Positions 1 to 53,411 of a stretch of DNA of 64,000 bases are shown here, piece after piece. The stretch lies in contig RDEW01000007.1 in NCBI GenBank assembly GCA_011109175.1, positions 681,712 through 745,711 on the forward strand, written 5' to 3'. Under the pieces are notes generated by a model. That model did no database searches and was not told the origin of the DNA. It worked only from the letters and a program-made list of their open reading frames with translations. Each line of letters begins with the position of its first letter. The first letter of the stretch is position 1. Position numbers and translations under genes: made by a program. Source of the stretch: Dicyema japonicum (taxonomy: Eukaryota > Animalia > Dicyemida).

Positions 1-3000
1 TACCTCGAATAACCAGACAACAACTGCTAATAACACAGGCACAAGCTTAAATAACCAGACAACAACAGCAACGAACACAGGCAGTACGACCATTAACCAG
101 ACTACAATAGGAACTAATACAAGAACCACGTCTAATAAACAGATTACAACAGCAACAAACACAGTCTATACGTCAAATAACCCGACTACAAATTCAACTA
201 ACATAGGCAACACCTCCAAAAACCAGACTACACCAGTAATTACTACAAGCACAACCTCCAATTATCACACTACAAAAATACCTATTACTTCTTCTTTAGG
301 TATGATTTTTGATAACAAATAGCATCGTATAATGGGACTACATCTAATAAGCAGACAACAACGTCAACTAACACAGGCACTACCGCGAATAATCAGACAA
401 CACCAGCATCAAATCCAAGCACTACCTCCAATAACCAGACAACAACATCAACAAATACAGACACTACATCAAATAACCAAACAACAACTGCATCTAACAC
501 AGGCACAAAATCCAATAACCAGACAACAACAGCAACTAGCACTAGCACAACCTCTAATAACCAGATAACAACGTCAACCTACACAGGCACTACCGCGAAT
601 AATCAGACAACAACAGCATCAAATCCAAGCACTACCTCCAATAACCAGACAACAACATCAACAAATACAGACACTACATCGAATAACCAAACAACAACTG
701 CATCTAACACAGGAACAAAATCCAATAACAATACAACAAGAGCAATTAACACAGGCTCTACGTCAAATAACCAGACAACAACTGCTAATAACACAGGCAC
801 AAGCTTTAATACCCAGTCAACATCAGCAACTAACACATACACAGACCAATAACCAGAGAACAACTGCAACAAACAAAGGAATAACTACCAATAACAAAAC
901 TACGACTGCCAATAATACAAGCACTACCTCGAAGAACAATGCAACAACAGCGACTAACACAGGCTCTACGTCAAATAACCGACTACTACTTTAACTAACA
1001 CAGGCACCATGTCGAATAACCAGACTACACCAGTATTTACTACAAGCACAACCTCCAATAATCACACTACAAATTATCCAACAACTTCTTCAGGTTTGCT
1101 TTTTGATAACAAATAGCATATAATAATGGCACTACATCGAATAACCAGACAACTATAGCAACTAACACAGGCACAACGACCAATAACCAGAGTACAACTG
1201 CAACAAACAATGGAATAACAACTAATAACAAAACTACTATAGCCAATAATACAAGCACTACCTCGAATAACAATACAACAACAGCAACTAACACAGGGAC
1301 AACGACCAATAACCAGAGTACAACTGCAACAAATAATGGAATTACGACCAATAACAAAACTACTACATCCAATAATACAAGCACTACATCGAATAACCAG
1401 ACAATAACTGCAACTAATACAGGCACTATCTCGAATAACCAGACAACAACTGCTAATAACACAGGCACAACCTTAAATAACCAGACAACATCGACAACTA
1501 AAACAGACACAACGACCAACAACCAGAGTACAACTGCAACAAACAAAGGAATAACGACCAATAACATAACTACGACAGCCAATAATACAAGCACTACCTG
1601 GAAGAACAATGCAACAACAGCAACTAACACAGGCTCTACGTCAAATAACCAGACTACAACTTCAACTAACACAGGCACCACGTCGAATAACCAGACTACA
1701 CCAGTAATTTCTACAAGAACAACCTTCAATAATCAGACTACAAATAAACCAACCAATTCTTCTTCAGGTTTGCTTTTTGATAACAAATAGCACATAATAA
1801 TGGCACTACATCTAATAACCCGACTACAACTTCAGATAACACAGGCACCACGTCGAATAACCAGACTACATTAGTAATAACTACAAGCTCAACCACAATA
1901 ATCAGACTACAAATAAACAAACTACTTCTTCTTCAGGTTTACTTTTTGATAACATATAGCATATAATAATGGCACTACCTCGAATAACCAGACAACAACT
2001 GCTAATAACACAGGCACAAGCTTAAATAACCAGACAACAACAGCAACGAACACAGGCAGTACGACCATTAACCAGACTACAATAGGAACTAATACAAGAA
2101 CCACGTCTAATAAACAGATTACAACAGCAACAAACACAGTCTATACGTCAAATAACCCGACTACAAATTCAACTAACATAGGCAACACCTCCAAAAACCA
2201 GACTACACCAGTAATTACTACAAGCACAACCTCCAATTATAACACTACAAAATACCTATTACTTCTTCTTTAGGTATGATTTTGATAACAAATAGCATAT
2301 AATAATGGCACTACATCGAATAACCAGATAACAACGTCAACTAACACAGGCACTACCGCGAATAATCAGACAACACCAGCATCAAATCCAAGCACTACCT
2401 CCAATAACCAGACAACAACATCAACAAATACAGACACTACATCAAATAACCAAACAACAACTGCATCTAACACAGGCACAAAATCCAATAACCAGACAAC
2501 AACAGCAACTAGCACTAGCACAACCTCTAATAACCAGATAACAACGTCAACCTACACAGGCACTACCGCGAATAATCAGACAACAACAGCATCAAATCCA
2601 AGCACTACCTCCAATAACCAGACAACAACATCAACAAATACAGACACTACATCGAATAACCAAACAACAACTGCATCTAACACAGGAACAAAATCAATAA
2701 CAATACAACAAGAGCAACTAACACAGGCTCTACGTCAAATAACCAGACAACAACTGCTAATAACACAGGCACAAGCTTTAATACCCAGTCAACATCAGCA
2801 ACTAACACATACACAACGACCAATAACCAGAGAACAACTGCAACAAACAAAGGAATAACTACCAATAACAAAACTACGACTGCCAATAATACAAGCACTA
2901 CTCGAAGAACAATGCAACAACAGCGACTAACACAGGCTCTACGTCAAATAACCCGACTACTACTTTAACTAACACAGGCACCATGTCGAATAACCAGACT

Positions 3001-6000
3001 ACACCAGTATTTACTACAAGCACAACCTCCAATAATCACACTACAAATTATCCAACAACTTCTTCAGGTTTGCTTTTTGATAACAAATAGCATATAATAA
3101 TGGCACTACATCGAATAACCAGACAACTATAGCAACTAACACAGGCACAACGACCAATAACCAGAGTACAACTGCAACAAACAATGGAATAACAACTAAT
3201 AACAAAACTACTATAGCCAATAATACAAGCACTACCTCGAATAACAATACAACAACAGCAACTAACACAGGGACAACGACCAATAACCAGAGTACAACTG
3301 CAACAAATAATGGAATTACGACGCAATAACAAAACTACTACATCCAATAATACAAGCACTACATCGAATAACCAGACAATAACTGCAACTAATACAGGCA
3401 CTATCTCGAATAACCAGACAACAACTGCTAATAACACAGGCACAACCTTAAATAACCAGACAACATCGACAACTAAAACAGACACAACGACCAACAACCA
3501 GAGTACAACTGCAACAAACAAAGGAATAACGACCAATAACAATAACTACGACAGCCATAATACAAGCACTACCTGGAAGAACAATGCAACAACAGCAACT
3601 AACACAGGCTCTACGTCAAATAACCAGACTACAACTTCAACTAACACAGGCACCACGTCGAATAACCAGACTAACACAGTAATTTCTACAAGAACAACCT
3701 TCAATAATCAGAACTACAAATAAACCAACCAATTCTTCTTCAGGTTTGCTTTTTGATAACAATAGCACATAATAATGGCACTACATCTAATAACCCGACT
3801 ACAACTTCAGATAACACAGGCACCACGTCGAATAACCAGACTACATTAGTAATAACTACAAGCTCAACCACCAATAATCAGACTACAAATAAACAAACTA
3901 CTTCTTCTTCAGGTTTACTTTTTGATAACATATAGCATATAATAATGGCACTACCTCGAATAACCAGACAACAACTGCTAATAACACAGGCACAAGCTTA
4001 AATAACCAGACAACAACAGCAACGAACACAGGCAGTACGACCATTAACCAGACTACAATAGGAACTAATACAAGAACCACGTCTAATAAACAGATTACAA
4101 CAGCAACAAACACAGTCTATACGTCAAATAACCCGACTACAAATTCAACTAACATAGGCAACACCTCCAAAAACCAGACTACACAGTAATTACTACAAGC
4201 ACAACCTCCAATTATCACACTACAAATACCTATTACTTCTTCTTTAGGTATGATTTTTGATAACAAATAGCATCGTATAATGGGACTACATCTAATAAGC
4301 AGACAACAACGTCAACTAACACAGGCACTACCGCGAATAATCAGACAACACCAGCACAAATCCCAAGCACTACCTCCAATAACCAGACCAACAACATCAA
4401 CAAATACAGCACTACATCAAATAACCAAACAACCAACTGCATCTAACAACAGGCACAAAATCCATAACCAGACAACAACAGCAACTAGCACTAGCACAAC
4501 CTCTAATAACCAGATAACAACGTCAACCTACACAGGCACTACCGGCGAATAATCAGACAACAACAGCATCAAATCAAGCACTACTCCAATAACCAGACAA
4601 ACAACATCAACAAATACAGACACTACATCAAATAACCAAACAACAACTGCATCTACACAGGCACAAAATCCAATAACCAGACAACAACAGAACTAGCACT
4701 AGCCAACCTCTAATAACCAGATAACAACGTCAACGCTACACAGGCACTACCGCGAATAATCAGACAACAACAGCTCAATCCAAGCACTACCTCCAATAAC
4801 CAGACAACAACATCAACAAATACAGACACTACATCGAATAACCAAACACAACTTCATCTAACACAGGATCAAATCCAATAACAATACAACAAGAGCAATT
4901 AACACAGGCTCTACGTCAAATAACAGACAACAACTGCTAATAACACAGGCACAAGTTTTAATACTCAGTCAACATCAGCAACTAACACATACACAACGAC
5001 CAATAACAGAGAACAACTGCACAAACAAAGGAATAACTACCAATAACAAAAACTACGACTGCCAATAATACAAGCACTACCTCGAAGAACAATGCAACAA
5101 CAGCGACTAACACAGGCTCTACGTCAAATAACCCGACTACTACTTAACTAACACAGGCACCATGTCGAATAACCAGACTACACCAGTATTTACTACAAGC
5201 ACAAACCTCCAATAATCACACTACAAATTATCCAACAACTTCTTCAGGTTTGCTTTTTTGATAACAAATAGCATATAATAATGGCACTACATCGAATAAC
5301 CAGACAACTATAGCAAACTAACACAGGCACAACGACCAATAACCAGAGTACAACTGCACAAACAATGGAATAACAACTAATAACAAAACTACTATAGCCA
5401 ATAATACAAGCACTACCTCGAATAACAATACAACAACAGCAACTAAACACAGGGACACGACCAATAACCAGAGTACAACTGCAACAATATGGAATTACGA
5501 CCAATAACAAAACTACTACATCCAATAATACAAGCACTACACGAATAACCAGACAATAATGAACTAATACAGGCACTATCTCGAATAACAGAACAACAAC
5601 TGCTAATAACACAGGCACAACCTTAAATAACCAGACAACATCGACAACTAAAACAGACCAAAACCAAGCAGCACACAACACCAGAATACAACTGCAAACA
5701 AACAAAGGAATAACGACCAATAACATAACTACGAACAGCCAATAATACAAGCACTACCTGGAAGAACAATGCAACAACAGCAACTAACACAGGCTCTACG
5801 TCAATAACCAGACTACAACTTCAACTAACACAGGCCACCACGTCGAATAACCAGACTACACCAGTAATTTCTACAAAGAACAACCTTCAATAATCAGACT
5901 ACAAATAAACCAACCAATTCTTCTTCAGGTTTGCTTTTTGATAACAAATAGCACATAATAATGGCACTACATCTAATAACCCGACTACAACTTCAGATAA

Positions 6001-9000
6001 CACAGGCACCACGTCGAATAACCAGACTACATTAGTATAAACTACAAGCTCAACCACCAATAATCAGACTACAATAAACACTACTTCTTCTTCAGGTTTA
6101 CTTTTGATAACATATAGCATATAATAATGGCACTACCTCGAATAACCAGACAACAACTGCTAATAACACAGGCACAAGCTTAAATAACCAGACAACAACA
6201 GCAACGAACACAGGCAGTACGACCATTAACCAGACTACAATAGGAACTAATACAAGAACCACGTCTAATAAACAGATTACAACAGCAACAAACACAGTCT
6301 ATACGTCAAATAACCCGACTACAAATTCAACTAACATAGGCAACACCTCCAAAAACCAGACTACACCAGTAATTACTACAAGCACAACCTCCAATTATCA
6401 CACTACAAAAATACCTATTACTTCTTCTTTAGGTATGATTTTTTGATAACAAATAGCATCGTATAATGGGACTACATCTAATAAGCAGACAACAACGTCA
6501 ACTAACACAGGCACTACCGCGAATAATCAGACAACACAGCATCAAATCCAAGCACTACCTCCAATAACCAGACAACAACATCAACAAATACAGACACTAC
6601 ATCAAATAACCAAACAACAACTGCATCTAACACAGGCACAAAATCCAATAACCAGACAACAACAGCAACTAGCACTAGCACAACCTCTAATAACCAGATA
6701 ACAACGTCAACCTACACAGGCACTACCGCGAATAATCAGACAACAACAGCATCAAATCCAAGCACTACCTCCAATAACCAGACAACAACATCAAACAAAT
6801 ACAGACACTACATCGAATAACCAAACAACAACTTCATCTAACACAGGAACAAAATCCAATAACAATACAACAAGAGCAATTAAACACAGGCTCTACGTCA
6901 AATAACCAGACAACAACTGCTAATAACACAGGCACAAGCTTTTAATACCAGTCCATCAGCAACTAACACATACACAACGACCAATAACCAGAGAACAACT
7001 GCAACAAACAAAGGAATAACTAAATAACAAAACTACGACTGCCAATAATACAAGCACTACCTCGAAGAACAATGCAACAACAGCGACTAACACAGGCTCT
7101 ACGTCAAATAACCCGACTACTACTTTAACTAACACAGGCACCATGTCGAATAACCAGACTACACGCAGTATTTACTACAAGCACAACCTCCAATAATCAC
7201 ACTACAAATTATCCAACAACTTCTTCAGGTTTGCTTTTTGATAACAAATAGCATATAATAATGGCACTACATCGAATAACCAGACAACTATAGCAACTAA
7301 CACAGGCAACAACGACCAATAACCAGAGTACAACTGCAACAAACAATGGAAAACAACTAATAACAAAACTACTATAGCCAATAATACAAGCACTACCTCG
7401 AATAACAATACAACACAGCACTACACACAGGGACAACGACCAATAACCAGAGTACAACTGCAACAAATATGGAATTACGACCATAACAAAACTACTACAT
7501 CCAATAATACAAGCACTACATCGAATAACCAGACAATAACTGCAACTAATACAGGCACTATCTCGAATAACCAGACAACAACTGCTAATAACACAGGCAC
7601 AAGCTTTAATACCCAGTCAACATCAGCAACTAACACATACACAACGACCAATAACCAGAGAACAACTGCAACAAACAAAGGAATAACTACCAATAACAAA
7701 ACTACGACTGCCAATAATACAAGCACTACCTCGAAGAACAATGCAACAACAGCGACTAACACAGGCTCTACGTCAAATAACCCGACTACTACTTTAACTA
7801 ACACAGGCACCATGTCGAATAACCAGACTACACCAGTATTTACTACAAGCACAACCTCCAATAATCACACTACAAATTATCCAACAACTTCTTCAGGTTT
7901 GCTTTTTGATAACAAATAGCATATAATAATGGCACTACATCGAATAACCAGACAACTATAGCAACTAACACAGGCACAACGACCAATAACCAGAGTACAA
8001 CTGCAACAAACAATGGAATAACAACTAATAACAAAACTACTATAGCCAATAATACAAGCACTACCTCGAATAACAATACAACAACAGCAACTAACACAGG
8101 GACAACGACCAATAACCAGAGTACAACTGCAACAAATAATGGAATTACGACCAATAACAAAACTACTACATCCAATAATACAAGCACTACATCGAATAAC
8201 CAGACAATAACTGCAACTAATACAGGCACTATCTCGAATAACCAGACAACAACTGCTAATAACACAGGCACAAGCTTAAATAACCAGACAACAACAGCAA
8301 CGAACACAGGCAGTACGACCATTAACCAGACTACAATAGGAACTAATACAAGAACCACGTCTAATAAACAGATTACAACAGCAACAAACACAGTCTATAC
8401 GTCAAATAACGCGACTACAAATTCAACTAACATAGGCAACACCTCCAAAAACCAGACTACACCAGTAATTACTACAAGCACAACCTCCAATTATCACACT
8501 TACAAAAATACCTATTACTTCTTCTTTAGGTGATGATTTTGATAACAAATAGCATCGAAATGGGACTACATCTAATAAGCAGACAACAACGTCACTAACA
8601 CAGGCACTACCGCGAATAATCAGACAACACCAGCATCAAATCCAAGCACTACCTCCAATAACCAGACAACAACATCAACAAATACAGACACTACATCAAA
8701 TAACCAAACAACAACTGCATCTAACACAGGCACAAAATCCAATAACCAGACAACAACAGCAACTAGCACTAGCACAACCTCTAATAACCAGATAACAACG
8801 TCAACCTACACAGGCACTACCGCGAATAATCAGACAACAACAGCATCAAATCCAAGCACTACCTCCAATAACCAACAAACAACATCAACAAATACAGACA
8901 CTACATCGAATAACCAAACAACAACTGCATCTAACACAGGAACAAAATCCAATAACAATACAACAAGAGCAATTAAACACAGGCTCTACGTCAAATAAAC

Positions 9001-12000
9001 CAGACAACAACTGCTAATAACACAGGCACAAGCTTTAATTACCCAGTCAACATCAGCAACTAACATATACACAACGACCAATAACCAGAGAACAACTGCA
9101 ACAAACAAAGGAATAACTACCAATAAACAAAACTACGACTGCCAATAATACAAGCACTACCTCGAAGAACAATGCAACAACAGCGACTAACACAGGCTCT
9201 ACGTCAAATAACCCGACTACTACTTTAACTAAACACAGGCACCATGTCGAATAAACCAGACTACACCAGTATTTACTACAAGCACAACCTCCAATAATCA
9301 CACTACAAATTATCCAACAACTTCTTCAGGTTTGCTTTTTGATAACAAATAGCATATAATAATGGCACTACATCGAATAACCAGACAACTATAGCAACTA
9401 ACACAGGCACAACGACCAATAACCAGAGTACAACTGCAACAAACAATGGAATAACAACTAATAACAAAACTACTATAGCCAATAATACAAGCACTACTCG
9501 AATAACAATACAACAACAGCAACTAACACAGGGACAACGACCAATAACCAGAGTACAAACTGCAACAAATAATGGAATTACGACCAATAACAAAACTACT
9601 ACATCCAATAATACAAGCACTACATCGAATAACCAGACAATAACTGCAACTAATACAGGCACTATCTCGAATAACCAGACAACAACTGCTAATAACACAG
9701 GCACAACCTTAAATAACCAGACAACATCGACAACTAAAACAGACACAACGACCAACAACCAGAGTACAACTGCAACAAACAAAGGAATAAACGACCAATA
9801 ACATAACTACGACAGCCAATAATACAAGCACTACCTGGAAGAACAATGCACAACAGCAACTAACACAGGCTCTACGTCAAATAACCAGACTACAACTTCA
9901 AACTAACACAGGCACCACGTCGAATAACCAGACTACACCAGTAATTTCTACAAGAACAACCTTCAATAATCAGACTACAAATAAACCAACCAATTCTTCT
10001 TCAGGTTTGCTTTTGATAACAAATAGCACATAATAATGGCACTACATCTAATAACCCGACTACAACTTCAGATAACACAGGCACCACGTCGAATAACCAG
10101 ACTACATTAGTAATAACTACAAGCTCAACCACCAATAATCAGACTACAAATAAACAAACTACTTCTTCTTCAGGTTTACTTTTTTGATAACATATAGCAT
10201 ATAATAATGGCACTACCTCGAATAACCAGACAACAAAACTGCTAATAAACACAGGCACAAGCTTAAATAACCAGACAACAACAGCAAACGAACACAGGCA
10301 GTACGACCATTAACCAGACTACAATAGGAACTAATACAAGAACCACGTCTAATAAACAGATTACAACAGCAACAAAAACACAGTCTATACGTCAAATAAC
10401 CCGACTACAAATTCAACTAACATAGGCAACACCTCCAAAAAACCAGACTACACCAGTAATTACTACAAGCACAACCTCCAATTATCACACTACAAAAATA
10501 CCTATTACTTCTTCTTTAGGTATGATTTTGATAAACAAATAGCATCGTATAATGGACTACATCTAATAAGCAGACAACAACGTCAACTAACACAGGCACT
10601 ACCGCGAATAATCAGACAACACCAGCATCAAATCCAAGCACTACCTCCAATAACCAGACAACAACATCAACAAATACAGACACTACATCAAATAACCAAA
10701 CAACAACTGCATCTAACACAGGCACAAAATCCAATAACCAGACAACAACAGCAACTAGCACTAGCACAACCTCTAATAACCAGATAACAACGTCAACCTA
10801 CACAGGCACTACCGCGAATAATCAGACAACAACAGCATCAAATCCAAGCACTACCTCCAATAACCAGACAACAACATCAACAAAATACAGACACTACATC
10901 GAATAACCAAACAACAACTGCATCTAACACAGGAACAAATCCAATAACAATACAACAAGAGCAATTAACACAGGCTCTACGTCAAATAACCAGACAACAA
11001 CTGCTAATAACACAGGCACAAGCTTTAATACCCAGTCAACATCAGCAACTAACACATACACAACGACCAATAACCAGAGAACAACTGCAACAAACAAAGG
11101 AATAACTACCAATAACAAAACTACGACTGCCAATAATACAAGCACTACCTCGAAGAACAATGCAACAACAGCGACTAACACAGGCTCTACGTCAAATAAC
11201 CCGACTACTACTTTAACTAACACAGGCACCATGTCGAATAACCAGACTACACCAGTATTTACTACAAGCACAACCTCCAATAATCACACTACAAATTATC
11301 CAACAACTTCTTCAGGTTTGCTTTTTGATAACAAATAGCATATAATAATGGCACTACATCGAATAACCAGACAACTATAGCAACTAACACAGGCACAACG
11401 ACCAATAACCAGAGTACAACTGCAACAAACAATGGAATAACAACTAATAAAAAACTACTATAGCCAATAATACAAGCACTACCTCGAATAACAATACAAC
11501 AACAGCAACTAACACAGGGACAACGACCAATAACCAGAGTACAACTGCAACAAATAATGGAATTACGACCAATAACAAAACTACTACATCCAATAATACA
11601 AGCACTACATCGAATAACCAGACAATAACTGCAACTAATACAGGCACTATCTCGAATAACCAGACAACAACTGCTAATAACACAGGCACAACCTTAAATA
11701 ACCAGACAACATCGACAACTAAAACAGACACAACGACCAACAACCAGAGTACAACTGCAACAAACAAAGGAATAACGACCAATAACATAACTACGACAGC
11801 CAATAATACAAGCACTACCTGGAAGAACAATGCAACAACAGCAACTAACACAGGCTCTACGTCAAATAACCAGACTACAACTTCAACTAACACAGGCACC
11901 ACGTCGAATAACCAGACTACACCAGTAATTTCTACAAGAACAACCTTCAATAATCAGACTACAAATAAACCAACCAATTCTTCTTCAGGTTTGTTTTGAT

Positions 12001-18000: not shown

Positions 18001-21000
18001 CACCACGTCGAATAACCAGACTACATTAGTAATAACTACAAGCTCAACCACCAATAATCAGACTACAAATAAACAAACTACTTCTTCTTCAGGTTTACTT
18101 TTTGATAACATATAGCATATAATAATGGCACTACCTCGAATAACCAGACAACAACAGCAACGAACACAGGCAGTACGACCATTAACCAGACTACAATAGG
18201 AACTAATACAAGAACCACGTCTAATAAACAGATTACAACAGCAACAAACACAGTCTATACGTCAAATAACCCGACTACAAATTCAACTAACATAGGCAAC
18301 ACCTCCAAAAACCAGACTACACCAGTAATTACTACAAGCACAACCTCCAATTATCACACTACAAAAATACCTATTACTTCTTCTTTAGGTATGATTTTTG
18401 ATAACAAATAGCATCGTATAATGGGACTACATCTAATAAGCAGACAACAACGTCAACTAACACAGGCACTACCGCGAATAATCAGACAACACCAGCAACA
18501 AATCCAAGCACTACCTCCAATAACCAGACAACAACATCAACAAATACAGACACTACATCAAATAACCAAACAACAACTGCATCTAACACAGGCACAAAAT
18601 CCAATAACCAGACAACAACAGCAACTAGCACTAGCACAACCTCTAATAACCAGATAACAACGTCAACCTACACAGGCACTACCGCGAATAATCAGACAAC
18701 AACAGCATCAAATCCAAGCACTACCTCCAATAACCAGACAACAACATCAACAAATACAGACACTACATCGAATAACCAAACAACAACTGCATCTAACACA
18801 GGAACAAAATCCAATAACAATACAACAAGAGCAATTAACACAGGCTCTACGTCAAATAACCAGACAACAACTGCTAATAACACAGGCACAAGCTTTAATA
18901 CCCAGTCAACATCAGCAACTAACACATACACAACGACCAAATAACCAGAGAACAACTGCCAACAAACAAAGGAAAACTACAATAACAAAACTACGACTGC
19001 CAAAATACAAGCACTACCTCGAAGAACAATGCAACAACAGCGACTAACACAGGCTCTACGTCAAATAACCCGACTACTACTTTAACTAACACAGGCACCA
19101 TGTCGAATAACCAGACTACACCAGTATTTACTACAAGCACAACCTCCAATAATCACACTACAAATTATCCAACAACTTCTTCAGGTTTGCTTTTTATAAC
19201 AAATAGCATATAATAATGGCACTACATCGAATAACCAGACAACTATAGCAACTAACACAGGCACAACGACCAATAACCAGAGTACAACTGCAACAAACAA
19301 TGGAATAACAACTAATAACAAAACTACTATAGCCAATAATACAAGCACTACCTCGAATAACAATACCAACAACAGCAACTAAACAGGACAACGACCAATA
19401 ACCAGATACAACTGCAACAAATAATGGAATTACGACCAATAACAAAACTACTACATCCAATAATACAAGCACTACATCGAATAACCAGACAATAACTGCA
19501 ACTAATACAGGCACTATCTCGAATAACCAGACAACAACTGCTAATAACACAGCACAACCTTAAATAACCAGACAACATCGACAACTAAAACAGACACAAC
19601 GACCAACAACCAGAGTACAACTGCAACAAACAAAGGAATAACGACCAATAACATAACTACGACAGCCAATAATACAAGCACTACCTGGAAGAACAATGCA
19701 ACAACAGCAACTAACACAGGCTCTACGTCAAATAACCAGACAACAACTTCAACTAACACAGGCACCACGTCGAATAACCAGACTACACCAGTAATTTCTA
19801 CAAGAACAACCTTCAATAATCAGACTACAAATAAACCAACCAATTCTTCTTCAGGTTTGCTTTTTGATAACAAATAGCACATAATAATGGCACTACATCT
19901 AATAACCCGACTACAACTTCAGATAACACAGGCACCACGTCGAATAACCAGACTACATTAGTAATAACTACAAGCTCAACCACAATAATCAGACTACAAA
20001 TAAACAAACTACTTCTTCTTCAGGTTTACTTTTTGATAACATATAGCATATAATAATGGCACTACCTCGAATAACCAGACAACAACTGCTAATAACACAG
20101 GCACAAGCTTAAATAACCAGACAACAACAGCAACGAACACAGGCAGTACGACCATTAACCAGACTACAATAGGAACTAATACAAGAACCACGTCTAATAA
20201 ACAGATTACAACAGCAACAAACACAGTCTATACGTCAAATAACCCGACTACAAATTCAAACTAACATAGCAACACCTCCAAAAAACCAGACTACACCAGT
20301 AATTACTACAAGCACAACCTCCAATTATCACACTCAAAAATACCTATTACTTCTTCTTTAGGTATGATTTTTTGATAACAAATAGCATCGTATAATGGAC
20401 TACATCTAATAAGCAGACAACAACGTCAACTAACACAGCACTACCGCGAATAATCAGACAACACCAGCATCAAATCAAAGCACTACCTCCAATAACCAGA
20501 CAAACAACATCAACAAATACAGACACTACATCAAATAACCAAACAACAACTGCATCTAACACAGGCACAAAATCCAATAACCAGACAACAACAGCAACTA
20601 GCACTAGCACAACCTCTAATAACCAGATAACAACGTCAACCACACAGGCACTACGCGAATAATCAGACAACACAGCATCAAATCCAAGCACTACCTCCAA
20701 TAACCAGACAAACAACATCAACAAATACAGACACTACATCGAATAACCAAACAACAACTGCATCTAACACAGGAACAAAATCCAATAACAATACAACAAG
20801 AGCAATTAACACAGGCTCTACGTCAAATAACCAGACAACAAACTGCTAATAACACAGGCACAAGCTTTAATACCCAGTCAACATCAGCAACTAACACATA
20901 CACACGACCAATAACCAGAGAACAACTGCAACAAACAAAGGAATAACTACCAATAACAAAAACTACGACTGCCAATAATACAAGCACTACCTCGAAGAAA

Positions 21001-24000
21001 CAATGCAACAACAGCGACTAACACAGGCTCTACGTCAAATAACCCGACTACTACTTTAACTAACACAGGCACCATGTCGAATAACCAGACTACACCAGTA
21101 TTTACTACAAGCACAACCTCCAATAATCACACTACAAATTATCCAACAACTATCTTCAGGTTTGCTTTTTGAAACAAATAGCATATAATAATGGCACTAC
21201 ATCGAATAACCAGACAACTATAGCAACTAACACAGCACAACGACCAATAACCAGAGTACAACTGCAACAAACAATGGAATAACAAACTAATAACAAAACT
21301 ACTATAGCCAATAATACAAGCACTACCTCGAATAACAATACAACAACAGCAACTAACACAGGACAACGACCAATAACCAGAGTACAACTGCAACAAATAA
21401 TGGAATTACGCACAATAACAAAACAAACTACATCCAATAATACAAGCACTACATCGAATAGACAAAACTGCAACTAATACAGGCACTATCTCGAATAACC
21501 AGACAACAACTGCTAATAACACAGGCACAAGCTTAAATAACCAGACAACAACAGCAACGAACACAGGCAGTACGACCATTAACCAGACTACAATAGGAAC
21601 TAATACAAGAACCACGTCTAATAAACAGATTACAACAGCAACAAACACAGTCTATACGTCAAATAACGCGACTACAAATTCAACTAACATAGGCAACACC
21701 TCCAAAAAACCAGACTACACCAGTAATTACTACAAGCACAACCTCCAATTATCACACTACAAAAATACCTATTACTTCTTCTTTAGGTATGATTTTTGAT
21801 AACAAATAGCATCGTATAATGGGACTACATCTAATAAGCAGACAACAACGTCAACTAACACAGGCACTTACGCGAATAATCAGACAACACCAGCAACAAA
21901 TCCAAGCACTACCTCCAATAACCAGACAACAACATCAACAAATACAGACACTACATCAAATAACCAAACAACAACTGCATCTAACACAGGCCACAAAATC
22001 CAATAACCAGACAACAACAGCAAACTAGCACTAGCACAACCTCTAATAACCAGATAACAACGTCAACCTACACAGGCACTACCGCGAATAATCAGACAAC
22101 AACAGCATCAAATCAAGCACTACCTCCAATAACCAGACAAACAACATCAACAAATACAGACACTACATCGAATAACCAAACAACAACTGCATCTAACACA
22201 GGAACAAATCCAATAACAATACAACAAGAGCAATTAACACAGGCTCTACGTCAAATAACCAGACAACAACTGCTAATAACACAGGCACAAGCTTTAATAC
22301 CCAGTCAACATCAGCAACTAACACATACACAACGACCAATAACCAGGAGAACAACTGCAACAAACAAAGGAATAACTACCAATAACAAAACTACGACTGC
22401 CAATAATACAAGCACTACCTCGAAAAACAATGCAACAACAGCGACTAACACAGGCTCTACGTCAAATAACCCGACTACTACTTTAACTAACACAGGCACC
22501 ATGTCGAATAACCAGACTACACCAGTATTTACTACAAGCACAACCTCCAATAATCACACTACAAATATATCCAACAACTTCTTCAGGTTTGCTTTTTGAT
22601 AACAAATAGCATATAATAATGGCACTACATCGAATAACCAGACAACTATTAGCAACTAACACAGGCACAACGACCAATAACCAGAGTACAACTGCAACAA
22701 ACAATGGAATAACAACTAATAACAAAAACTACTATAGCCAATAATACAAGCACTACCTCGAATAACAATACAACAACAGCAACTAACACAGGGACAACGA
22801 CCAATAACCAGAGTACAACTGCAACAAATAATGGAATTACGACCAATAACAAAACTACTACATCCAATAATACAAGCACTACATCGAATAACCAGACAAT
22901 AACTGCAACTAATACAGGCACTATCTCGAATAACCAGACAACAACTGCTAATAACACAGGCACAACCTTAAATAACCAGACAACATCGACAACTAAAACA
23001 GACACAACGACCAACAACCAGAGTACAACTGCAACAAACAAAGGAATAACGACCAATAACATAACTACGACAGCCAATAATACAAGCACTACCTGGAAGA
23101 ACAATGCAACAACAGCAACTAACACAGGCTCTACGTCAAATAACCAGACTACAACTTCAACTAACACAGGCACCACGTCGAATAACCAGACTACACCAGT
23201 AATTTCTACAAGAACAACCTTCAATAATCAGACTACAAATAAACCAACCAATTCTTCTTCAGGTTTGCTTTTTGATAACAAATAGCACATAATAATGGCA
23301 CTACATCTAATAACCCGACTACAACTTCAGATAACACAGGCACCACGTCGAATAACCAGACTACATTAGTAATAACTACAAGCTCAACCACCAATAATCA
23401 GACTACAAATAAACAAACTACTTCTTCTTCAGGTTTACTTTTTGATAACATATAGCATATAATAATGGCACTACCTCGAATAACCAGACAACAACTGCTA
23501 ATAACACAGGCACAAGCTTAAATAACCAGACAACAACAGCAACGAACACAGGCAGTACGACCATTAACCAGACTACAATAGGAACTAATACAAGAACCAC
23601 GTCTAATAAACAGATTACAACAGCAACAAACACAGTCTATACGTCAAATAACCCGACTACAAATTCAACTAACATAGGCAACACCTCCAAAAACCAGACT
23701 ACACCAGTAATTACTACAAGCACAACCTCCAATTATCACACTACAAAAAATACCTATTACTTCTTCTTTAGGTATGATTTTTGATAACAAATAGCATCGT
23801 ATAATGGGACTACATCTAATAAGCAGACAACAACGTCAACTAACACAGGCACTACCGCGAATAATCAGACAACACCAGCATCAAATCCAAGCACTACCTC
23901 CAATAACCAGACAACAACATCAACAAATACAGACACTACATCAAATAACCAAACAACAACTGCATCTAACACAGGCACAAAATCCAATAACCAGACAACA

Positions 24001-27000
24001 ACAGCAACTAGCACTAGCACAACCTCTAATAACCAGATAACAACGTCAACCTACACAGGCACTACCGCGAATAATCAGACAACAACAGCATCAAATCCAA
24101 GCACTACCTCCAATAACCAGACAACAACATCAACAAATACAGACACTACATCGAATAACCAAACAACAACTGCATCTAACACAGGAACAAAATCCAATAA
24201 CAATACAACAAGAGCAATTAACACAGGCTCTACGTCAAATAACCAGACAACAACTGCTAATAACACAGGCACAAGCTTTAATACCCAGTCAACATCAGCA
24301 ACTAACACATACACAACGACCAATAACCAGAGAACAACTGCAACAAACAAAGGAATAACTACCAATAACAAAACTACGACTGCCAATAATACAAGCACTA
24401 CCTCGAAGAACAATGCAACAACAGCGACTAACACAGGCTCTACGTCAAATAACCCGACTACTACTTTAACTAACACAGGCACCATGTCGAATAACCAGAC
24501 TACACCAGTATTTACTACAAGCACAACCTCCAATAATCACACTACAAATTATCCAACAACTTCTTCAGGTTGCTTTTTTGATAACAAATAGCATATAATA
24601 ATGGCACTACATCGAATAACCAGACAACTATAGCAACTAACACAGGCACAACGACCAATAACCAGAGTACAACTGCAACAAACAATGGAATAACAACTAA
24701 TAACAAAACTACTATAGCCAATAATACAAGCACTACCTCGAATAACAATACAACAACAGCAACTAACACAGGGACAACGACCAATAACCAGAGTACAACT
24801 GCAACAAATAATGGAATTACGACCAATAACAAAACTACTACATCCAATAATACAAGCACTACATCGAATAACCAGACAATAACTGCAACTAATACAGGCA
24901 CTATCTCGAATAACCAGACAACAACTGCTAATAACACAGGCACAACCTTAAATAACCAGACAACATCGACAACTAAAACAGACACAACGACCAACAACCA
25001 GAGTACAACTGCAACAAACAAAGGAATAACGACCAATAACATAACTACGACAGCCAATAATACAAGCACTACCTGGAAGAACAATGCAACAACAGCAACT
25101 AACACAGGCTCTACGTCAAATAACCAGACTACAACTTCAACTAACACAGGCACCACGTCGAATAACCAGACTACACCAGTAATTTCTACAAGAACAACCT
25201 TCAATAATCAGACTACAAAAAACCAACCAATTCTTCTTCAGGTTTGCTTTTTGATAACAAATAGCACATAATAATGGCACTACATCTAATAACCCGACTA
25301 CAACTTCAGATAACACAGGCACCACGTCGAATAACCAGACTACATTAGTAATAACTACAAGCTCAACCACCAATAATCAGACTACAAATAAACAAACTAC
25401 TTCTTCTTCAGGTTTACTTTTTGATAACATATAGCATATAATAATGGCACTACCTCGAATAACCAGACAACAACTGCTAATAACACAGGCACAAGCTTAA
25501 ATAACCAGACAACAACAGCAACGAACACAGGCAGTACGACCATTAACCAGACTACAATAGGAACTAATACAAGAACCACGTCTAATAAACAGATTACAAC
25601 AGCAACAAACACAGTCTATACGTCAAATAACCCGACTACAAATTCAACTAACATAGGCAACACCTCCAAAAACCAGACTACACCAGTAATTACTACAAGC
25701 ACAACCTCCAATTATCACACTACAAAAATACCTATTACTTCTTCTTTAGGTATGATTTTTGATAACAAATAGCATCGTATAATGGGACTACATCTAATAA
25801 GCAGACAACAACGTCAACTAACACAGGCACTACCGCGAATAATCAGACAACACCAGCATCAAATCCAAGCACTACCTCCAATAACCAGACAACAACATCA
25901 ACAAATACAGACACTACATCAAATAACCAAACAAACAACTGCATCTAACACAGGCACAAAATCCAATAACCAGACAACAACAGCAACTAGCACTAGCACA
26001 ACCTCTAATAACCAGATAACAACGTCAACCTACACAGGCACTACCGCGAATAATCAGACAACAACAGCATCAAATCCAAGCACTACCTCCAATAACCAGA
26101 CAACAACATCAACAAATACAGACACTACATCGAATAACCAAACAACAACTGCATCTAACACAGGAACAAAATCCAATAACAATACAACAAGAGCAATTAA
26201 CACAGGCTCTACGTCAAATAACCAGACAACAACTGCTAATAACACAGGCACAAGCTTTAATACCCAGTCAACATCAGCAACTAACACATACACAACGACC
26301 AATAACCAGAGAACAACTGCAACAAACAAAGGAATAACTACCAATAACAAAACTACGACTGCCAATAATACAAGCACTACCTCGAAGAACAATGCAACAA
26401 CAGCGACTAACACAGGCTCTACGTCAAATAACCCGACTACTACTTTAACTAACACAGGCACCATGTCGAATAACCAGACTACACCAGTATTTACTACAAG
26501 CACAACCTCCAATAATCACACTACAAATTATCCAACAACTTCTTCAGGTTTGCTTTTGATAACAAATAGCATATAATAATGGCACTACATCGAATAACCA
26601 GACAACTATAGCAACTAACACAGGCACAACGACCAATAACCAGAGTACAACTGCAACAAACAATGGAATAACAACTAATAACAAAACTACTATAGCCAAT
26701 AATACAAGCACTACCTCGAATAACAATACAACAACAGCAACTAACACAGGGACAACGACCAATAACCAGAGTACAACTGCAACAAATAATGGAATTACGA
26801 CCAATAACAATACTACATCCAATAATACAAGCACTACATCGAATAACCAGACAATAACTGCAACTAATACAGGCACTATCTCGAATAACCAGACAACAAC
26901 TGCTAATAACACAGGCACAACCTTAAATAACCAGACAACATCGACAACTAAAACAGACACAACGACCAACAACCAGAGTACAACTGCAACAAACAAAGGA

Positions 27001-30000
27001 ATAACGACCAATAACATAACTACGACAGCCAATAATACAAGCACTACCTGGAAGAACAATGCAACAACAGCAACTAACACAGGCTCTACGTCAAATAACC
27101 AGACTACAACTTCAACTAACACAGGCACCACGTCGAATAACCAGACTACACCAGTAATTTCTACAAGAACAACCTTCAATAATCAGACTACAAATAAACC
27201 AACCAATTCTTCTTCAGGTTTGCTTTTTGATAACAAATAGCACATAATAATGGCACTACATCTAATAACCCGACTACAACTTCAGATAACACAGGCACCA
27301 CGTCGAATAACCAGACTACATTAGTAATAACTACAAGCTCAACCACCAATAATCAGACTACAAATAAACAAACTACTTCTTCTTCAGGTTTACTTTTTGA
27401 TAACATATAGCATATAATAATGGCACTACCTCGAATAACCAGACAACAACTGCTAATAACACAGGCACAAGCTTAAATAACCAGACAACAACAGCAACGA
27501 ACACAGGCAGTACGACCATTAACCAGACTACAATAGGAACTAATACAAGAACCACGTCTAATAAACAGATTACAACAGCAACAAACACAGTCTATACGTC
27601 AAATAACCCGACTACAAATTCAACTAACATAGGCAACACCTCCAAAAACCAGACTACACCAGTAATTACTACAAGCACAACCTCCAATTATCACACTACA
27701 AAAATACCTATTACTTCTTCTTTAGGTATGATTTTTGATAACAAATAGCATCGTATAATGGGACTACATCTAATAAGCAGACAACAACGTCAACTAACAC
27801 AGGCACTACCGCGAATAATCAGACAACACCAGCATCAAATCCAAGCACTACCTCCAATAACCAGACAACAACATCAACAAATACAGACACTACATCAAAT
27901 AACCAAACAACAACTGCATCTAACACAGGCACAAAATCCAATAACCAGACAACAACAGCAACTAGCACTAGCACAACCTCTAATAACCAGATAACAACGT
28001 CAACCTACACAGGCACTACCGCGAATAATCAGACAACAACAGCATCAAATCCAAGCACTACCTCCAATAACCAGACAACAACATCAAACAAATACAGACA
28101 CTACATCGAATAACCAAACAACAACTGCATCTAACACAGGAACAAAATCCAATAACAACAACAACAGCAACTAAACACAGGCCTACGTCAATAACCAGAC
28201 AACAACGTCAATACACAGGCCAACTAATACCCAGTCAATAATCAGACAACAACACATACAAACAGCACTACCTCCAATAACCAGACACAACTGCAAACAA
28301 ACAACACTACATCGAATAACCAAACAACAACTCACTCTAAACAGGATCAGATCCAAGAACAATAACAAGAGCGACTTAACACAGGCTCTACGTCAAATAC
28401 AGACAACAACTGCTAATAACACAGGCACAAGTTTTTAATACCTCAGTCAACATCAGCAACTAACCATACACAACGAAAAACCAGAGAACAACTGCAACAA
28501 ACAAAGGAATAACTACCAATAACAAAACTACGACTGCCAATACAAGCACTACCTCGAATAGACAATGCAACAACAGCGACTAACACAGGCTCTACGTCAA
28601 ATAACCCGACTACTACTTTATACTAACACAGGCACCATGTCGAATAACCAGACTACAACCAGTATTTACTACAAGCACAAACCTCCAATAATCACACTAC
28701 AAATTATCCAACAACTTCTTCAGGTTTGCTTTTTGATAACAAATAGCATATAATAATGGCACTACATCGAATAACCAGACAACTATAGCAACTAACACAG
28801 CACAACGACCAATAACCAGAGTACAACTGCAACAAACATGGAATACAATAAATAACAAAATACTATAGCCAATAATACAAGCACTACTCGAATAACAATA
28901 CAACACAGCAACTAACACAGGCTCTACGTCAAATAACCCGACTACAACTTCAACTAACACAGGCACCACGTCGAATAACCAGACTACACAAGTAATTTCT
29001 ACAAGAACAACCTTCAATAATCAGACTACAAATAAACAACCAATTCTTCTTCAGGTTTGCTTTTTGATAACAAATAGCACATAATAATGAACTACATCTA
29101 ATAACCCGACTACAACTTCAGATAACACAGGCACCACGTCGAAATAACCAGACTACATTAGTAATAACTACAAGCTCAACCGAATAATCAGACTACAAAT
29201 AAACAAACTACTTCTTCTTCAGGTTTACTTTTTGATAACATATAGCATATAATAATGGCACTACTCGAATAACCAGACAACAACTGCTAATAACACAGGG
29301 CACAAGCTTAAATAACCAGACAACAACAGCAACGAACACAGGCAGTACGACCATTAACCAGACTACATAGGAACTCAATACAAGAACCACGTCTAATAAA
29401 CGATTACAACAGCAACAAACACAGTCTATACGTCAAATAACCCGACTACAAATTCAACTAACATAGGCAACACCTCCAAAAACCAGACTACACAGTAATT
29501 ACTACAAGCACAACCTCCAATTATCACACTACAAAAATACCTATTACTTCTTCTTTAGGTATGATTTTTTGATAACAAATAGCATGTATAATGGGACTAC
29601 ATCTAATAAGCAGACAACAACGTCAACTAACACAGGCACTACCGCGAATAATCAGACAACACCAGCATCAAATCCAAGCACTACCTCCATAACCAGACCA
29701 ACACCATCAACAAATACAGACACTACATCAAATAACCAAACAACAACTGCATCTAACACAGGCACAAAATCAATAACCAGACAACAACAGCAACTAGCAC
29801 TAGCACACCTCTAATAACCAGATAACAACGTCAACCTACACAGGCACTACCGCGAATAATCAGACAACAACAGCATCAAATCCAAGCACTACCTCCAATA
29901 ACCAGACAAACATCAACAATACAGACACTACATCAATAACCAAACAACAACTGCATCTAACACAGGCACAAAATCCAATAACCAGACAACAACAGCAACT

Positions 30001-31432
30001 AGCACTAGCACAACCTCTAATAACCAGATAACAACGTCAACCTACACAGGCACATACCCGCGAATTAATCAGACAACAACATCATCAAATCCAAGCACTA
30101 CTCCAATAACCAGACAACAACATCAACAATACAGACACTACATCGAATAACCAAACAACAACTTCATCTAACACAGGACAAAATCCAATAACATACAACA
30201 AGAGCAATTAACACAGGCTCTACGTCAAATAACCAGACAACAACTGCTAATAACACAGGCACAAGCTTTAATACTCCAGTCAACATCAGCAACTAACACA
30301 TACACAACGACCAATAACCAGAGAAACTGCAACAAACAAAGGAATAACTACCAATAACAAAACTACGACTGGCCAATAATACAAGCACTACCTCGAAGAA
30401 CAATGCAACAACAGCGACTAACACAGGCTCTACGTCAAATAACCCGACTACTACTTTAACTAACACAGGCACCATGTCGAATAACCAGACTACACCAGTA
30501 TTTACTACAAGCACAACCTCCAATAATCACACTACAAATTATCCAACAACTTCTTCAGGTTTGCTTTTTTGATAACAAATAGCATATAATAATGGCACTA
30601 CATCGAATAACCAGACAACTATAGCAACTAACACAGGCACAACGACCAATAACCAGAGTACAACTGCAACAAACAATGGAATAACAACTAATAACAAAAC
30701 TACTATAGCCAATAATACAAGCACTACCTCGAATAACAATACAACAACAGCAACTAACACAGGGCTCTACGACCAATAACCAGACTACAACTTCAACTAT
30801 CACAGGCACCACGTCGAATAACCAGACTACACAAGTAATTTCTACAAGAACAACCTTCAATAATCAGACTACAAATAAACCAACCAATTCTTCTTCAGGT
30901 TTGCTTTTTGATAACAAATAGCACATAATAATGGCACTACCTCGAATAACCAGACAACAACTGCTAATAACACAGGCACAAGCTTAAATAACCAGATAAC
31001 AACAGATGCTAACACACCTACTACATCTAATACTCATACAAGAGCATATAATACAAGCACAGCATCGAATAACCAGTCTACAAATAATCCAACTACTAAT
31101 TTATCATCTTATACTACTATTTCAGATTCTACACATTTTTTTAATAGTTAAAATTCTATAATTTTTTAGCTACTATTTTTTCGAATTCTACTTTTTCTAC
31201 ACCTTTTATTCCTTCTGGTTTTTTTGGATTTTATCATTTTAGACAATTTTAGTCTATCTTCAAAGCTTCTTGCAATTATTCTTCCAATTGTTTTTATCAT
31301 TCTTTTTTCTATAATACTCTTTTTTCTGTCGGCGTCGGTTATTATTTTTTTTATTTTAGACGTAATAGGCGTAATTTCAATAAATCCTTCGTTTTGAATA
31401 ATTCGTTTTTCGAATTTTCGACTTATCTGTGA
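1..31432 (+). CDS. Giant Thr/Asn-rich mucin-like type I membrane glycoprotein (5'-partial; ~60 exons separated by 23-nt introns; roughly 10,000 aa encoded in this window)
   Basis: Removing the 23-nt GT..AG segments at 300-322, 1094-1116, 1768-1790 and 1937-1959 (and their copies) joins phase-1 exons into one reading frame, e.g. ...PITSSL-A-SYNGTTSNKQ... and ...YPTTSS-A-YNNGTTSNNQ.... Individual copies carry scattered 1-nt indels that look like read errors. The array ends at ~31,000 and is followed by unique exons, a hydrophobic TM segment (31266-31357) and a stop at 31430-31432 (one homopolymer indel assumed). Confidence 0.88.
300..322 (+). other. 23-nt spliceosomal intron, type 1 (gtatgatttttgataacaaatag), repeated once per unit
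   Basis: GT..AG ends; it is an AT-rich interruption of the ACN/AAY codon pattern; removal restores the frame (phase 1). Confidence 0.88.
1094..1116 (+). other. 23-nt intron, type 2 (gtttgctttttgataacaaatag); identical sequence at 1768-1790
   Basis: GT..AG ends, phase 1, frame restored on removal; occurs twice per unit. Confidence 0.88.
1937..1959 (+). other. 23-nt intron, type 3 (gtttactttttgataacatatag)
   Basis: GT..AG ends, phase 1, frame restored on removal; occurs once per unit. Confidence 0.88.
31147..31242 (+). other. Two terminal tiny introns of the mucin gene (31147-31169, 23 nt; 31218-31242, 25 nt)
   Basis: gttaaaattctataattttttag and gtttttttggattttatcattttag, both phase 1. Removing them links ...STHFFN-T-TIFSNSTFSTPFIPS-D-NFSLSSKLLAIILPIVF.... 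Confidence 0.75.
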
Positions 31433-31619
31433 TTTATTTGACTAATCAAAGTTATTTTTGGTTCATTTAACTTTTTTTAATTACAATTAAATTTATTTGC
31501 TCATTCTTTTTTTAATTATTGATCTGCACTCGAACTGAAGAAAAACTAAGAAATTGATGACCCATTCAGTACAATCTGTTGTTGCAAATGAATTTGTGGG
31601 GATTCGTGTGGACACGTCG

Positions 31620-34600: not shown

Positions 34601-34750
34601 ATGGTTATCTGAAGCAGTTGGGGGTAGATAGGAAGCTCCAGGCCTATCTACAGTCCACTGTATTAAAGCGGACCTTAGAGAGCCGGACACTGGAGTATAG
34701 GAGGCAGAGCCCGGAGATGCCATATGGGTAGAGGGTTCAATTAGACAAGG
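31620..34750 (+). mobile_element. Degenerate non-LTR retrotransposon with RT and restriction-like endonuclease (R4/Dong-like clade)
   Basis: Frameshifted ORFs carry YRPITCMPTLYKLMTK, ENQLGTVRNCQGAKEQ, DVKKAYDSVDH, GDSMSPLLFVLCLEPL, FIDDLKMY and YLGV. These are followed by HNEVVRSLH and KPDIVVHDK..IIEVDIT..EKKRKYD (PD-(D/E)xK). Confidence 0.85.
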
Positions 34751-52771: not shown

Positions 52772-53411
52772 TAAAATAAATCGTTTTTAATAGATTTTTT
52801 CTTTTTATAACGTTCTTGGTTATTTGCTAATGTAACTGCAATTTAAATTTTTCAATAATAGGTTTTCAAGAATTTTATAAGGCGGAAGTAGTCTTATTTT
52901 GGAAACCCATTTCCCCTTATGATTTATATGGAAATGCCTTTAATCAACAATTTCTCTTCTGACCTCTCCCTTCTTTTTTGCCATCAGTAAGATCCAAGGA
53001 TCTCTGAGGTTTCGTTTTAAAGGCTTAACGGAGAACTCCCAGTCCAACATCTTTTATTAAGAGTTTCTGCTCTAAATTAATAAAAATAGATTTTATTCCA
53101 AGTTCAATAATAAGCTGAAAAAACTGATACCGAACAATTGGATCCTGGCTCTCAACTTTTTTCGATCGTGGTATTTTTTATTCATTAACCCAAGCTTACA
53201 ATCTTTGTAATCTAAGCAAAACAGTCACAACTGTTTAATCACGGAAAGAACCCAAGAAAGAACGTCTGCTTCGCCGACCCAATCTATCCACCAATAGTCA
53301 TTATAAACTTCAGTTGCGAAGAGAGGTGGAGAAGTAGGTATGTTCATCACACGTTTTACTCTGGTAAAAGTAGTAATATCCCTTTCAATAACTGTGTCGT
53401 GCCAGATTTTG

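Follow-up and report, generated by a model that had tools for sequence, protein, structure and literature searches.

The window analysed here is the whole stretch of 64,000 nucleotides (nt) of Dicyema japonicum DNA from contig RDEW01000007.1 (assembly GCA_011109175.1, positions 681,712 to 745,711 of the forward strand), and it opens with some 31 kb of tandemly repeated, satellite-like sequence. There, a 42-nt tandem unit spans positions 8-30831 (Tandem Repeats Finder), within which longer periods, one of 126 nt and others of about 170, 209 and 338 nt, are nested, and up to about 30 kb the plus strand is markedly rich in A and C (GC content 0.37-0.38, with a GC skew near -0.45 and an AT skew of +0.45), the composition being ordinary beyond. 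Positions 1-31359 of the plus strand probably correspond to the 3' part, at least 31 kb long, of one very large protein-coding gene with micro-introns, which would encode a giant type I membrane coat protein. The repeat structure seen there is confirmed as an observation and its interpretation as a hidden gene is supported, on account of (i) an open consensus reading frame, (ii) a codon-position signature, (iii) contigs resembling complementary DNA (cDNA) from which a micro-intron is missing, and (iv) haplotypes of the transmembrane (TM) exon differing only synonymously. The array and one of its canonical units are laid out below.

1..31146, plus strand: array of 61 exons and 60 micro-introns in 16 higher-order units, with about 29,770 exon nt, i.e., about 9,920 codons
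25435..27410, plus strand: canonical higher-order unit
25435..25749, plus strand: exon E1 of this unit
25750..25772, plus strand: intron a
25773..26547, plus strand: exon E2
26548..26569, plus strand: intron b
26570..27217, plus strand: exon E3
27218..27240, plus strand: intron b, second occurrence
27241..27387, plus strand: exon E4
27388..27410, plus strand: intron d

The higher-order unit, of about 1,979 bp, is composed in consensus of four exons and four introns in the order E1-a-E2-b-E3-b-E4-d, where the exon consensus, built by aligning 12-13 copies per exon type, measures 315 nt for E1, 774 nt for E2, 651 nt for E3 and 147 nt for E4, i.e., 105 + 258 + 217 + 49 = 629 codons. Relative to this consensus, the unit at 25435-27410 has one A too many at 25933 and lacks a T of intron b as well as 3 nt at 26810, and is otherwise identical. 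Three of the 16 units are variants, and the variant exons comprise two E3/E1 hybrids, one E1 shortened by exactly 42 nt, three E2 copies some 200-210 nt longer and, towards the 3' end, two short copies of E3. In all four types, the encoded exon opens with A-x-N-N-G-T-T-S-N-N-Q-T-T-T and closes with P-V-I-T-T-S followed by T-S-S, the final piece of 6-7 residues ending in T-S-S(S/L), and between these ends runs a perfect register of 14 residues, namely 7 x 14 + 7 in E1, 18 x 14 + 6 in E2, 15 x 14 + 7 in E3 and 3 x 14 + 7 in E4. Most exon copies show no substitution at all relative to the consensus, several being identical to it, and the units are near-identical, introns included, as concerted evolution would have it. 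A single exon+intron module was probably duplicated into a block of four diverged exons, which was then amplified as a block, and unequal recombination, following the register of the 42-nt sub-repeat, would keep the copies near-identical. That such recombination is ongoing is suggested by two traits of the array, i.e., copies that hardly differ by substitution and variants in register (the 42-nt loss, the gains of about 200 nt and the E3/E1 hybrids).

Much of this anatomy had been anticipated in the original prediction, drawn up from the sequence, and it stands: the arithmetic of the unit (258 + 217 + 49 + 105 = 629 residues in 1,979 bp) matches the computed consensus, 16 units are counted where about 15-16 were announced, the exon junctions at 299/323, 1093/1117, 1767/1791 and 1936/1960 are exact to the nucleotide, four 23-nt phase-1 introns per unit are recovered (the consensus splits G/CA), and the exon grammar is indeed common to all four types. 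The amplification in two steps proposed there is consistent with this grammar and with the near-identical introns, and the single frame said to run through the spliced satellite-like DNA is borne out by the consensus and by the clean copies. One predicted junction peptide of the spliced array reads ..ITSSLASYNGTTSNK.., and the one put forward originally, PITSSL joined to ASYNGTTSNK, was correct.

As to the introns, a pattern scan of the array finds 60 conserved segments of the form GT...GATAAC...AG, of which 45 are exactly 23 nt long as assembled and the others 21-24 nt, the variation lying mainly in a run of T. Forty-two of the 60 correspond to one of three sequences and the remainder are 1-2 letters away; type a begins with GTATGA, type b with GTTTGC, and type d with GTTTAC, the last ending in CATATAG, while 3' ends read ..AACAAATAG. 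Codons are interrupted after their first base (G/CA), i.e., in phase 1, and exon lengths are multiples of three, so that the exons are symmetric and the number of units never alters the frame. These segments show the features of ultra-short animal introns, namely a length below 30 nt, GT..AG ends with minimal flanking signal and A residues ahead of the AG. The same three features are reported for introns of D. japonicum and of myxobolids (PMC13644364), and a mean intron length of 38 bp is given for D. japonicum (PMC6736024). Like those short introns, the present ones (21-25 nt) have plain GT..AG ends with A residues ahead of the AG, lack a polypyrimidine tract and are seen removed in cDNA; unlike them, they form some 60 near-identical copies of one intron, repeated in tandem within one gene, an arrangement that is not described in the portions available of these two sources.

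Once the introns are removed, all 629 codons of the 1,887-nt consensus unit can be read without a stop in a single frame; the two other frames of the same strand have 19 and 81 stops and those of the opposite strand 25, 10 and 79. In 500 shuffled controls preserving dinucleotides, the best frame had 26 stops on average and never fewer than 15, and the unspliced unit carries 31-44 stops in every frame. For the long E2 variant, a consensus of three copies (981 nt) is still frameshifted, with 14 stops, the copies being too few and noisy. Among 43 diverged 14-mers, column entropy rises from 0.51 to 0.65 and 1.11 at codon positions 1, 2 and 3, respectively, and synonymous changes account for 35% of the differing codon pairs in frame vs 11% and 6.5% in the shifted frames. 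A codon-position pattern of this kind reveals selection acting on the peptide that the 14-mers encode; it is not that of a satellite.

A non-coding satellite or higher-order repeat was considered in its own right and rejected, given the frame-specific open reading frame (ORF), the third-position excess and the spliced cDNA contig.

Contigs (Logan) from four sequencing runs, here X1, X3, X5 and X6, were aligned to positions 25701-31700. X1 and X3 are genomic DNA obtained in 2019 from one sample, and their contigs keep the introns at 27388-27410, 27726-27748 and 30559-30582. X5, from 2017 and another study, behaves as a transcriptome, as judged from its small total of contigs (11.9 M letters), its near-zero depth (about 0.5 vs 1,985 and 56,132 in the DNA runs) on a very high-copy element at 31501-31700, and its high word depth on exons (roughly 300-8,400). 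Two introns are concerned by its contigs.

26548..26569, plus strand: b-type intron, exactly these 22 letters being absent from X5 record 19
25750..25772, plus strand: a-type intron whose donor is used in a second cDNA junction, the end of E1 being joined to an exon starting CATATAATAATGG

Record 19 is 348 nt long, aligns to 26228-26597 and has a depth of 890/890 at the site. The gene present here is transcribed and extends over at least 31 kb, its 5' end lying outside the window, and cDNA shows the exact loss of one or more of the near-identical 23-nt introns; transcription of the array and the loss of such segments from transcripts, both named as checks in the original prediction, are what this transcriptome-like contig displays. 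The second junction, 25746->26567, with GT..AG ends and a depth of 497, ties the end of E1 to a later exon start. In X6, a 2015 run filed under another organism name, the unspliced array is matched at 27130-27317 and 30400-30645 with 99-100% identity and a depth of 2-4, which would fit parasite DNA in a host or mixed sample.

This second junction bears on the possibility that the gene is real without specifying one giant anchored coat, either because exon skipping gives shorter isoforms of variable size or because the ectodomain leaves the cell, by shedding or secretion, to act as gel or adhesive. Any exon can indeed be skipped without breaking the frame, the splice sites are near-identical, and the transcripts of SmPoMuc in Schistosoma mansoni vary widely in repeat number (PMC2576457). 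However, the exon order seen in the junction is present in the genome at 2274-2296, so that no skipping is needed, the shorter side of the joint is just 24 letters long, and the terminal TM helix described below argues for anchoring, at least initially; overall, such a product is unlikely. It is equally doubtful that the locus acts as a splicing-based generator of diversity, where skipping among some 60 interchangeable phase-1 cassettes, along with recombination changing their copy number, would vary the length and composition of the coat; if true, cassette skipping would be the dicyemid counterpart of the "controlled chaos" of SmPoMuc, and the locus a natural setting in which spliceosomes have to pair dozens of identical ultra-short introns correctly.

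Returning to the giant anchored protein, its C-terminal end is predicted from the following features.

30922..31146, plus strand: last large exon, i.e., three 14-mers and then a unique juxtamembrane stretch rich in Thr, Asn and Ser
31147..31169, plus strand: predicted 23-nt phase-1 intron, the removal of which bypasses a TAA in frame and leads on into the following open exon
31170..31217, plus strand: predicted 48-nt exon (..TTIFSNSTFSTPFIPS)
31218..31242, plus strand: predicted 25-nt phase-1 intron, with a haplotype difference inside at 31235
31243..31359, plus strand: terminal coding exon, with the TM helix LLAIILPIVFIILFSIILFFF at about 31266-31327, then CRRRLLFFLF and a stop at 31357-31359
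31379..31384, plus strand: AATAAA, candidate polyadenylation signal 20 nt past the preferred stop
31338..31431, plus strand: alternative, disfavoured ending, in which a 22-nt intron (31338-31359) is followed by the tail RRNRRNFNKSFVLNNSFFEFSTYL, up to a stop at 31429-31431

The tail reading ...SDNFSLSSK-LLAIILPIVFIILFSIILFFF-CRRRLLFFLF-stop requires two T added after 31319, and these are present in all DNA contigs (36.6/36.6 in depth for X1 and 759/759 for X3); the C-terminal TM helix and short tail thus rest on two predicted micro-introns and on a read-supported insertion. The helix is a hydrophobic stretch of 21 residues, with a mean hydropathy of 3.3 over 19 residues. In the DNA runs, positions 31179-31517 exist in two versions of similar depth, which differ at 6 positions over 137 nt and then by 11 differences plus 5 gaps over 184 nt. 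Within the TM-helix exon, all four differences are third-position and synonymous; of the remaining tail differences, one falls in the predicted 25-nt intron (31235) and one changes Ile to Thr in the 48-nt exon. Beyond 31360, both versions diverge more, with indels, and all five substitutions found there would be non-synonymous under the alternative ending, which is why the shorter one, with its stop at 31357-31359, is preferred. The TM helix and tail announced in the original prediction are thus found, with a stop that most likely lies at 31357-31359 instead of near 31432, and at the cost of two more micro-introns and the inserted TT. One contig of the second version (X1 record 7, joint 26148->31163) runs upstream into an E2-like repeat and not into the unique last exon; the two versions may represent alleles that differ in their last exon, or the second may belong to a paralogous gene.

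A number of observations weigh against a functional giant gene and have to be put in the balance. In the assembly, 28 of the 59 complete exons are divisible by three and 31 are out of frame; the indels that could be checked against reads are a handful, and over 28100-30100 the Illumina contigs match much worse, with many small indels, probably reflecting a badly polished assembly. Substitutions among higher-order copies (22 synonymous, 58 non-synonymous and 2 stops) give no sign of purifying selection. On the transcript side, the tool labelled X5 "DNA?" and its RNA nature is our own deduction, precise removal is seen in it for one intron, the shortness of one side of the second joint has been mentioned, and no removal of the d-type intron or of either tail intron is seen in its contigs. 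X5 likewise has no depth on 31101-31500, leaving the 3' end without RNA support, maybe because three short exons between micro-introns are hard to align as contigs, and Logan contigs cannot prove that one transcript covers all units. The window holds neither start codon nor signal peptide, the array being open at its left edge. Lastly, with a clean 257-residue exon translation as query, a word-indexed protein search gave no match at E<=0.001, and an exhaustive HMMER search of 1.8 billion cluster representatives returned only unrelated low-complexity or periodic proteins with 21-43% identity, while Pfam, applied to the last exon and to the repeat exons, yielded no family at E<=1.

Some of these points, i.e., the exons out of frame, the lack of a synonymous excess among recent copy variants with their two stops, and the absence of any homologue or domain, are those expected of a transcribed but non-functional array, be it a decayed pseudogene or a satellite with incidentally spliced RNA, in which the frameshifts would be real. 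Such an array is nonetheless highly improbable, the frameshifts being read as errors of the long-read assembly. Indels far exceed substitutions in otherwise identical copies, many exon copies having 1-3 indels relative to the consensus and no substitution whatsoever, and they lie in homopolymers, 70 of the 83 one-nt indels adjoining the same base. Every indel within reach of reads turned out to be an assembly error: in the copy at 26570-27217, three missing bases were predicted at 26810 by the consensus and the Illumina DNA contigs insert exactly three, and these contigs also correct positions 30177 (+C), 30565 (-1, which restores a 23-nt intron) and 31319 (+TT). Frameshifts common to all raw reads, named in the original prediction as the mark of a pseudogenised or non-coding array, are not what the Illumina DNA contigs reveal at the indels that they reach. 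In addition, several copies equal the open consensus exactly, a strict 14-codon register combined with third-position variability is hard to obtain without selection on the protein, and the haplotypes of the TM exon differ only synonymously.

For the functional gene, the pre-mRNA would thus carry about 62 micro-introns, namely the 60 of the array and the two predicted in the tail, all with GT..AG ends, in phase 1 and A-rich before the AG. As array exons are multiples of 3 nt between phase-1 introns, splicing gives a single frame, which in the window amounts to about 9,970 codons (about 9,920 for the array and about 50 for the tail). The array is already under way at the first letter of the window, so that the gene extends upstream. 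In X1, the depth of unit-specific junctions (about 452) compared with that of the summed tail versions (36.6) corresponds to about 12 canonical units per haplotype, 13 being assembled, and the depth in X3 gives about 6; as a rough indication, the array does not extend far upstream and its 5' end possibly lies just beyond the window edge.

The encoded product is composed of 39.3% Thr, 21.6% Asn, 11.8% Ser (51% for Ser and Thr together) and 1.9% Pro, in 14-residue units close to A-T-N-T-G-T-T-S-N-N-Q-T-T-T, and contains about 54 N-x-S/T sequons per 629 residues, i.e., about 850 in the window. It would end with a short unique stalk, one TM helix and a short basic tail, which is the layout of a type I membrane protein, and dense N- and O-glycans are expected on its giant ectodomain, which would stand out as an extended brush or coat at the cell surface, either protecting the cell or mediating contact with the host. 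Continuity as a single protein, an upstream signal peptide, glycosylation, surface location and function are all features that we infer from the sequence. Rather than a disordered mucin-like brush, the 14-residue Thr/Asn repeat could fold as a beta-solenoid or Thr-ladder rod, i.e., a rigid fibre or adhesin, as its strict period without indels and its low Pro content would allow. AlphaFold run on one exon as a single sequence gave, as the best of five models, strands about 14 residues apart, one per 14-mer, but with a predicted local distance difference test (pLDDT) of 46.9 and a predicted template modelling score (pTM) of 0.42, the four others being worse; moreover, about one sequon per 14 residues and the Ser+Thr content predict dense glycans, which disfavour tight packing, and no structural or sequence relative was found, making such a rod quite improbable. 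An Atlas feature search gave scores of 0.81 at most, which is the chance level, and Rfam found nothing over the whole window.

The giant coat protein gene can be compared with several known systems. In S. mansoni, the variable number tandem repeat (VNTR) of SmPoMuc consists of exon 2 plus its introns (PMC2576457). The resemblance extends to a mucin-like, surface or secreted protein of a parasite, an exon+intron tandem repeat under concerted evolution, frame-preserving exons, and difficulty of assembly and annotation. Differences are nonetheless marked, since SmPoMuc is a multigene family in which a unit of about 1 kb, repeated about 20 times at most, holds a single 27-bp exon and long introns (PMC2576457), unlike the exons of 147-774 nt, 23-nt introns, four exon types, some 30 kb of coding sequence and Thr/Asn composition, not that of a classical mucin, encountered here. 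No similarity to SmPoMuc or to a known mucin family appeared in the word-indexed and exhaustive protein searches or in Pfam.

Vertebrate membrane mucins of the MUC1, MUC4 and MUC16 type have a Pro-rich VNTR in one large exon, followed by SEA, EGF or vWD domains. They share with the present gene a giant Ser/Thr-rich repeat ectodomain, a single TM helix, a short cytoplasmic tail and the expected glycan brush; the latter differs by its 1.9% Pro, 22% Asn and many N-sequons, and no SEA, vWD or EGF domain was found near the membrane by Pfam on the last exon and the repeat exons. In spiders, Flag silk is made of iterated exon-intron modules under concerted evolution (as cited in PMC2576457), and the glue genes AgSp1/2 are very long repetitive coding genes (PMC6553539). 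Very long coding sequences and hierarchical repeats are common to these and to the present gene, whereas silk and glue products are secreted fibre proteins, rich in Gly, Pro and Ala, encoded with long introns, devoid of a membrane anchor and unrelated in sequence. With SmPoMuc (PMC2576457) and Flag silk as precedents, introns inside the repeat itself are not as exceptional as the original prediction implied; what sets this one apart from known exon+intron repeats are its ultra-short near-identical introns, its large exons, its unit of four exon types, its coding length of about 30 kb, its Pro-poor, Asn-rich and strict 14-mer and, in the searches described above, the absence of any homologue or domain.

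Further along the window, other genes and elements surround this locus. A minus-strand gene, in pieces over 51320-50540, shows a weak C-type-lectin match (Lectin_C, E 0.076, restricted to the profile's C-terminal end) along with a Ser/Thr stalk, followed by a 25-nt phase-1 micro-intron (50690-50666), a TM helix, CIRYKLLFHFF and a stop. Its predicted C-terminus is in the same style as that of the giant gene, and its micro-intron indicates that micro-introns are normal in the D. japonicum genome. Just past the giant gene, the very high-copy element at 31501-31700 reaches a word depth of 56,132 in X3, where unique sequence has about 800; a large number of reads break off at 31621/31622 and 31655, and the element probably marks the 5' end of a long interspersed nuclear element (LINE) at 31.8-34.7 kb. 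The three LINE copies, one with an intact ORF of 806 residues carrying Exo_endo_phos (endonuclease) and RVT_1 (reverse transcriptase) and two split over several frames, are as follows.

59460..61880, plus strand: LINE copy
45374..47772, plus strand: LINE copy
31800..34700, plus strand: LINE copy

Two arrays of a 94-95-nt tandem repeat, at 53406-53663 and 55834-56020, are reverse complements of one another and enclose about 2.2 kb with ORFs resembling 40620-40946 (53843-54205, minus strand, for example); inverted arrays and ORFs may together form a mobile element with repeated inverted ends.

The genome of D. japonicum has a GC content of 36.7%, 49% of repeats and very short introns, and was assembled from PacBio RS II and Illumina data, and anything repeated more than 30 times was masked for its annotation (PMC6736024). 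The window fits this species by its GC content of about 0.37, its animal-type LINEs, its abundant repeats, its assembly errors of the long-read kind and its introns of 23-25 nt. Myxobolid myxozoans are the other animals with introns below 30 nt, and Henneguya was judged less likely from its GC content of 29% (PMC13644364); a ciliate or nucleomorph source of the tiny introns was considered too, and dropped in view of the LINEs and the GC content. In micro-intron genomes, surface-protein genes of very large size can thus escape notice through repeat masking. With some sixty near-identical introns of 23 nt, a single transcript makes a natural test-bed for the recognition of ultra-short introns, and the in-register variants, i.e., the 42-nt deletion, the duplications of about 200-210 nt and the E3/E1 hybrid exons, record how such arrays evolve. 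To our knowledge, nothing molecular has been described of the interface between dicyemids and cephalopods; the product of this gene is a candidate for the molecule covering the dicyemid where the parasite meets the kidney tissue and urine of its cephalopod host.

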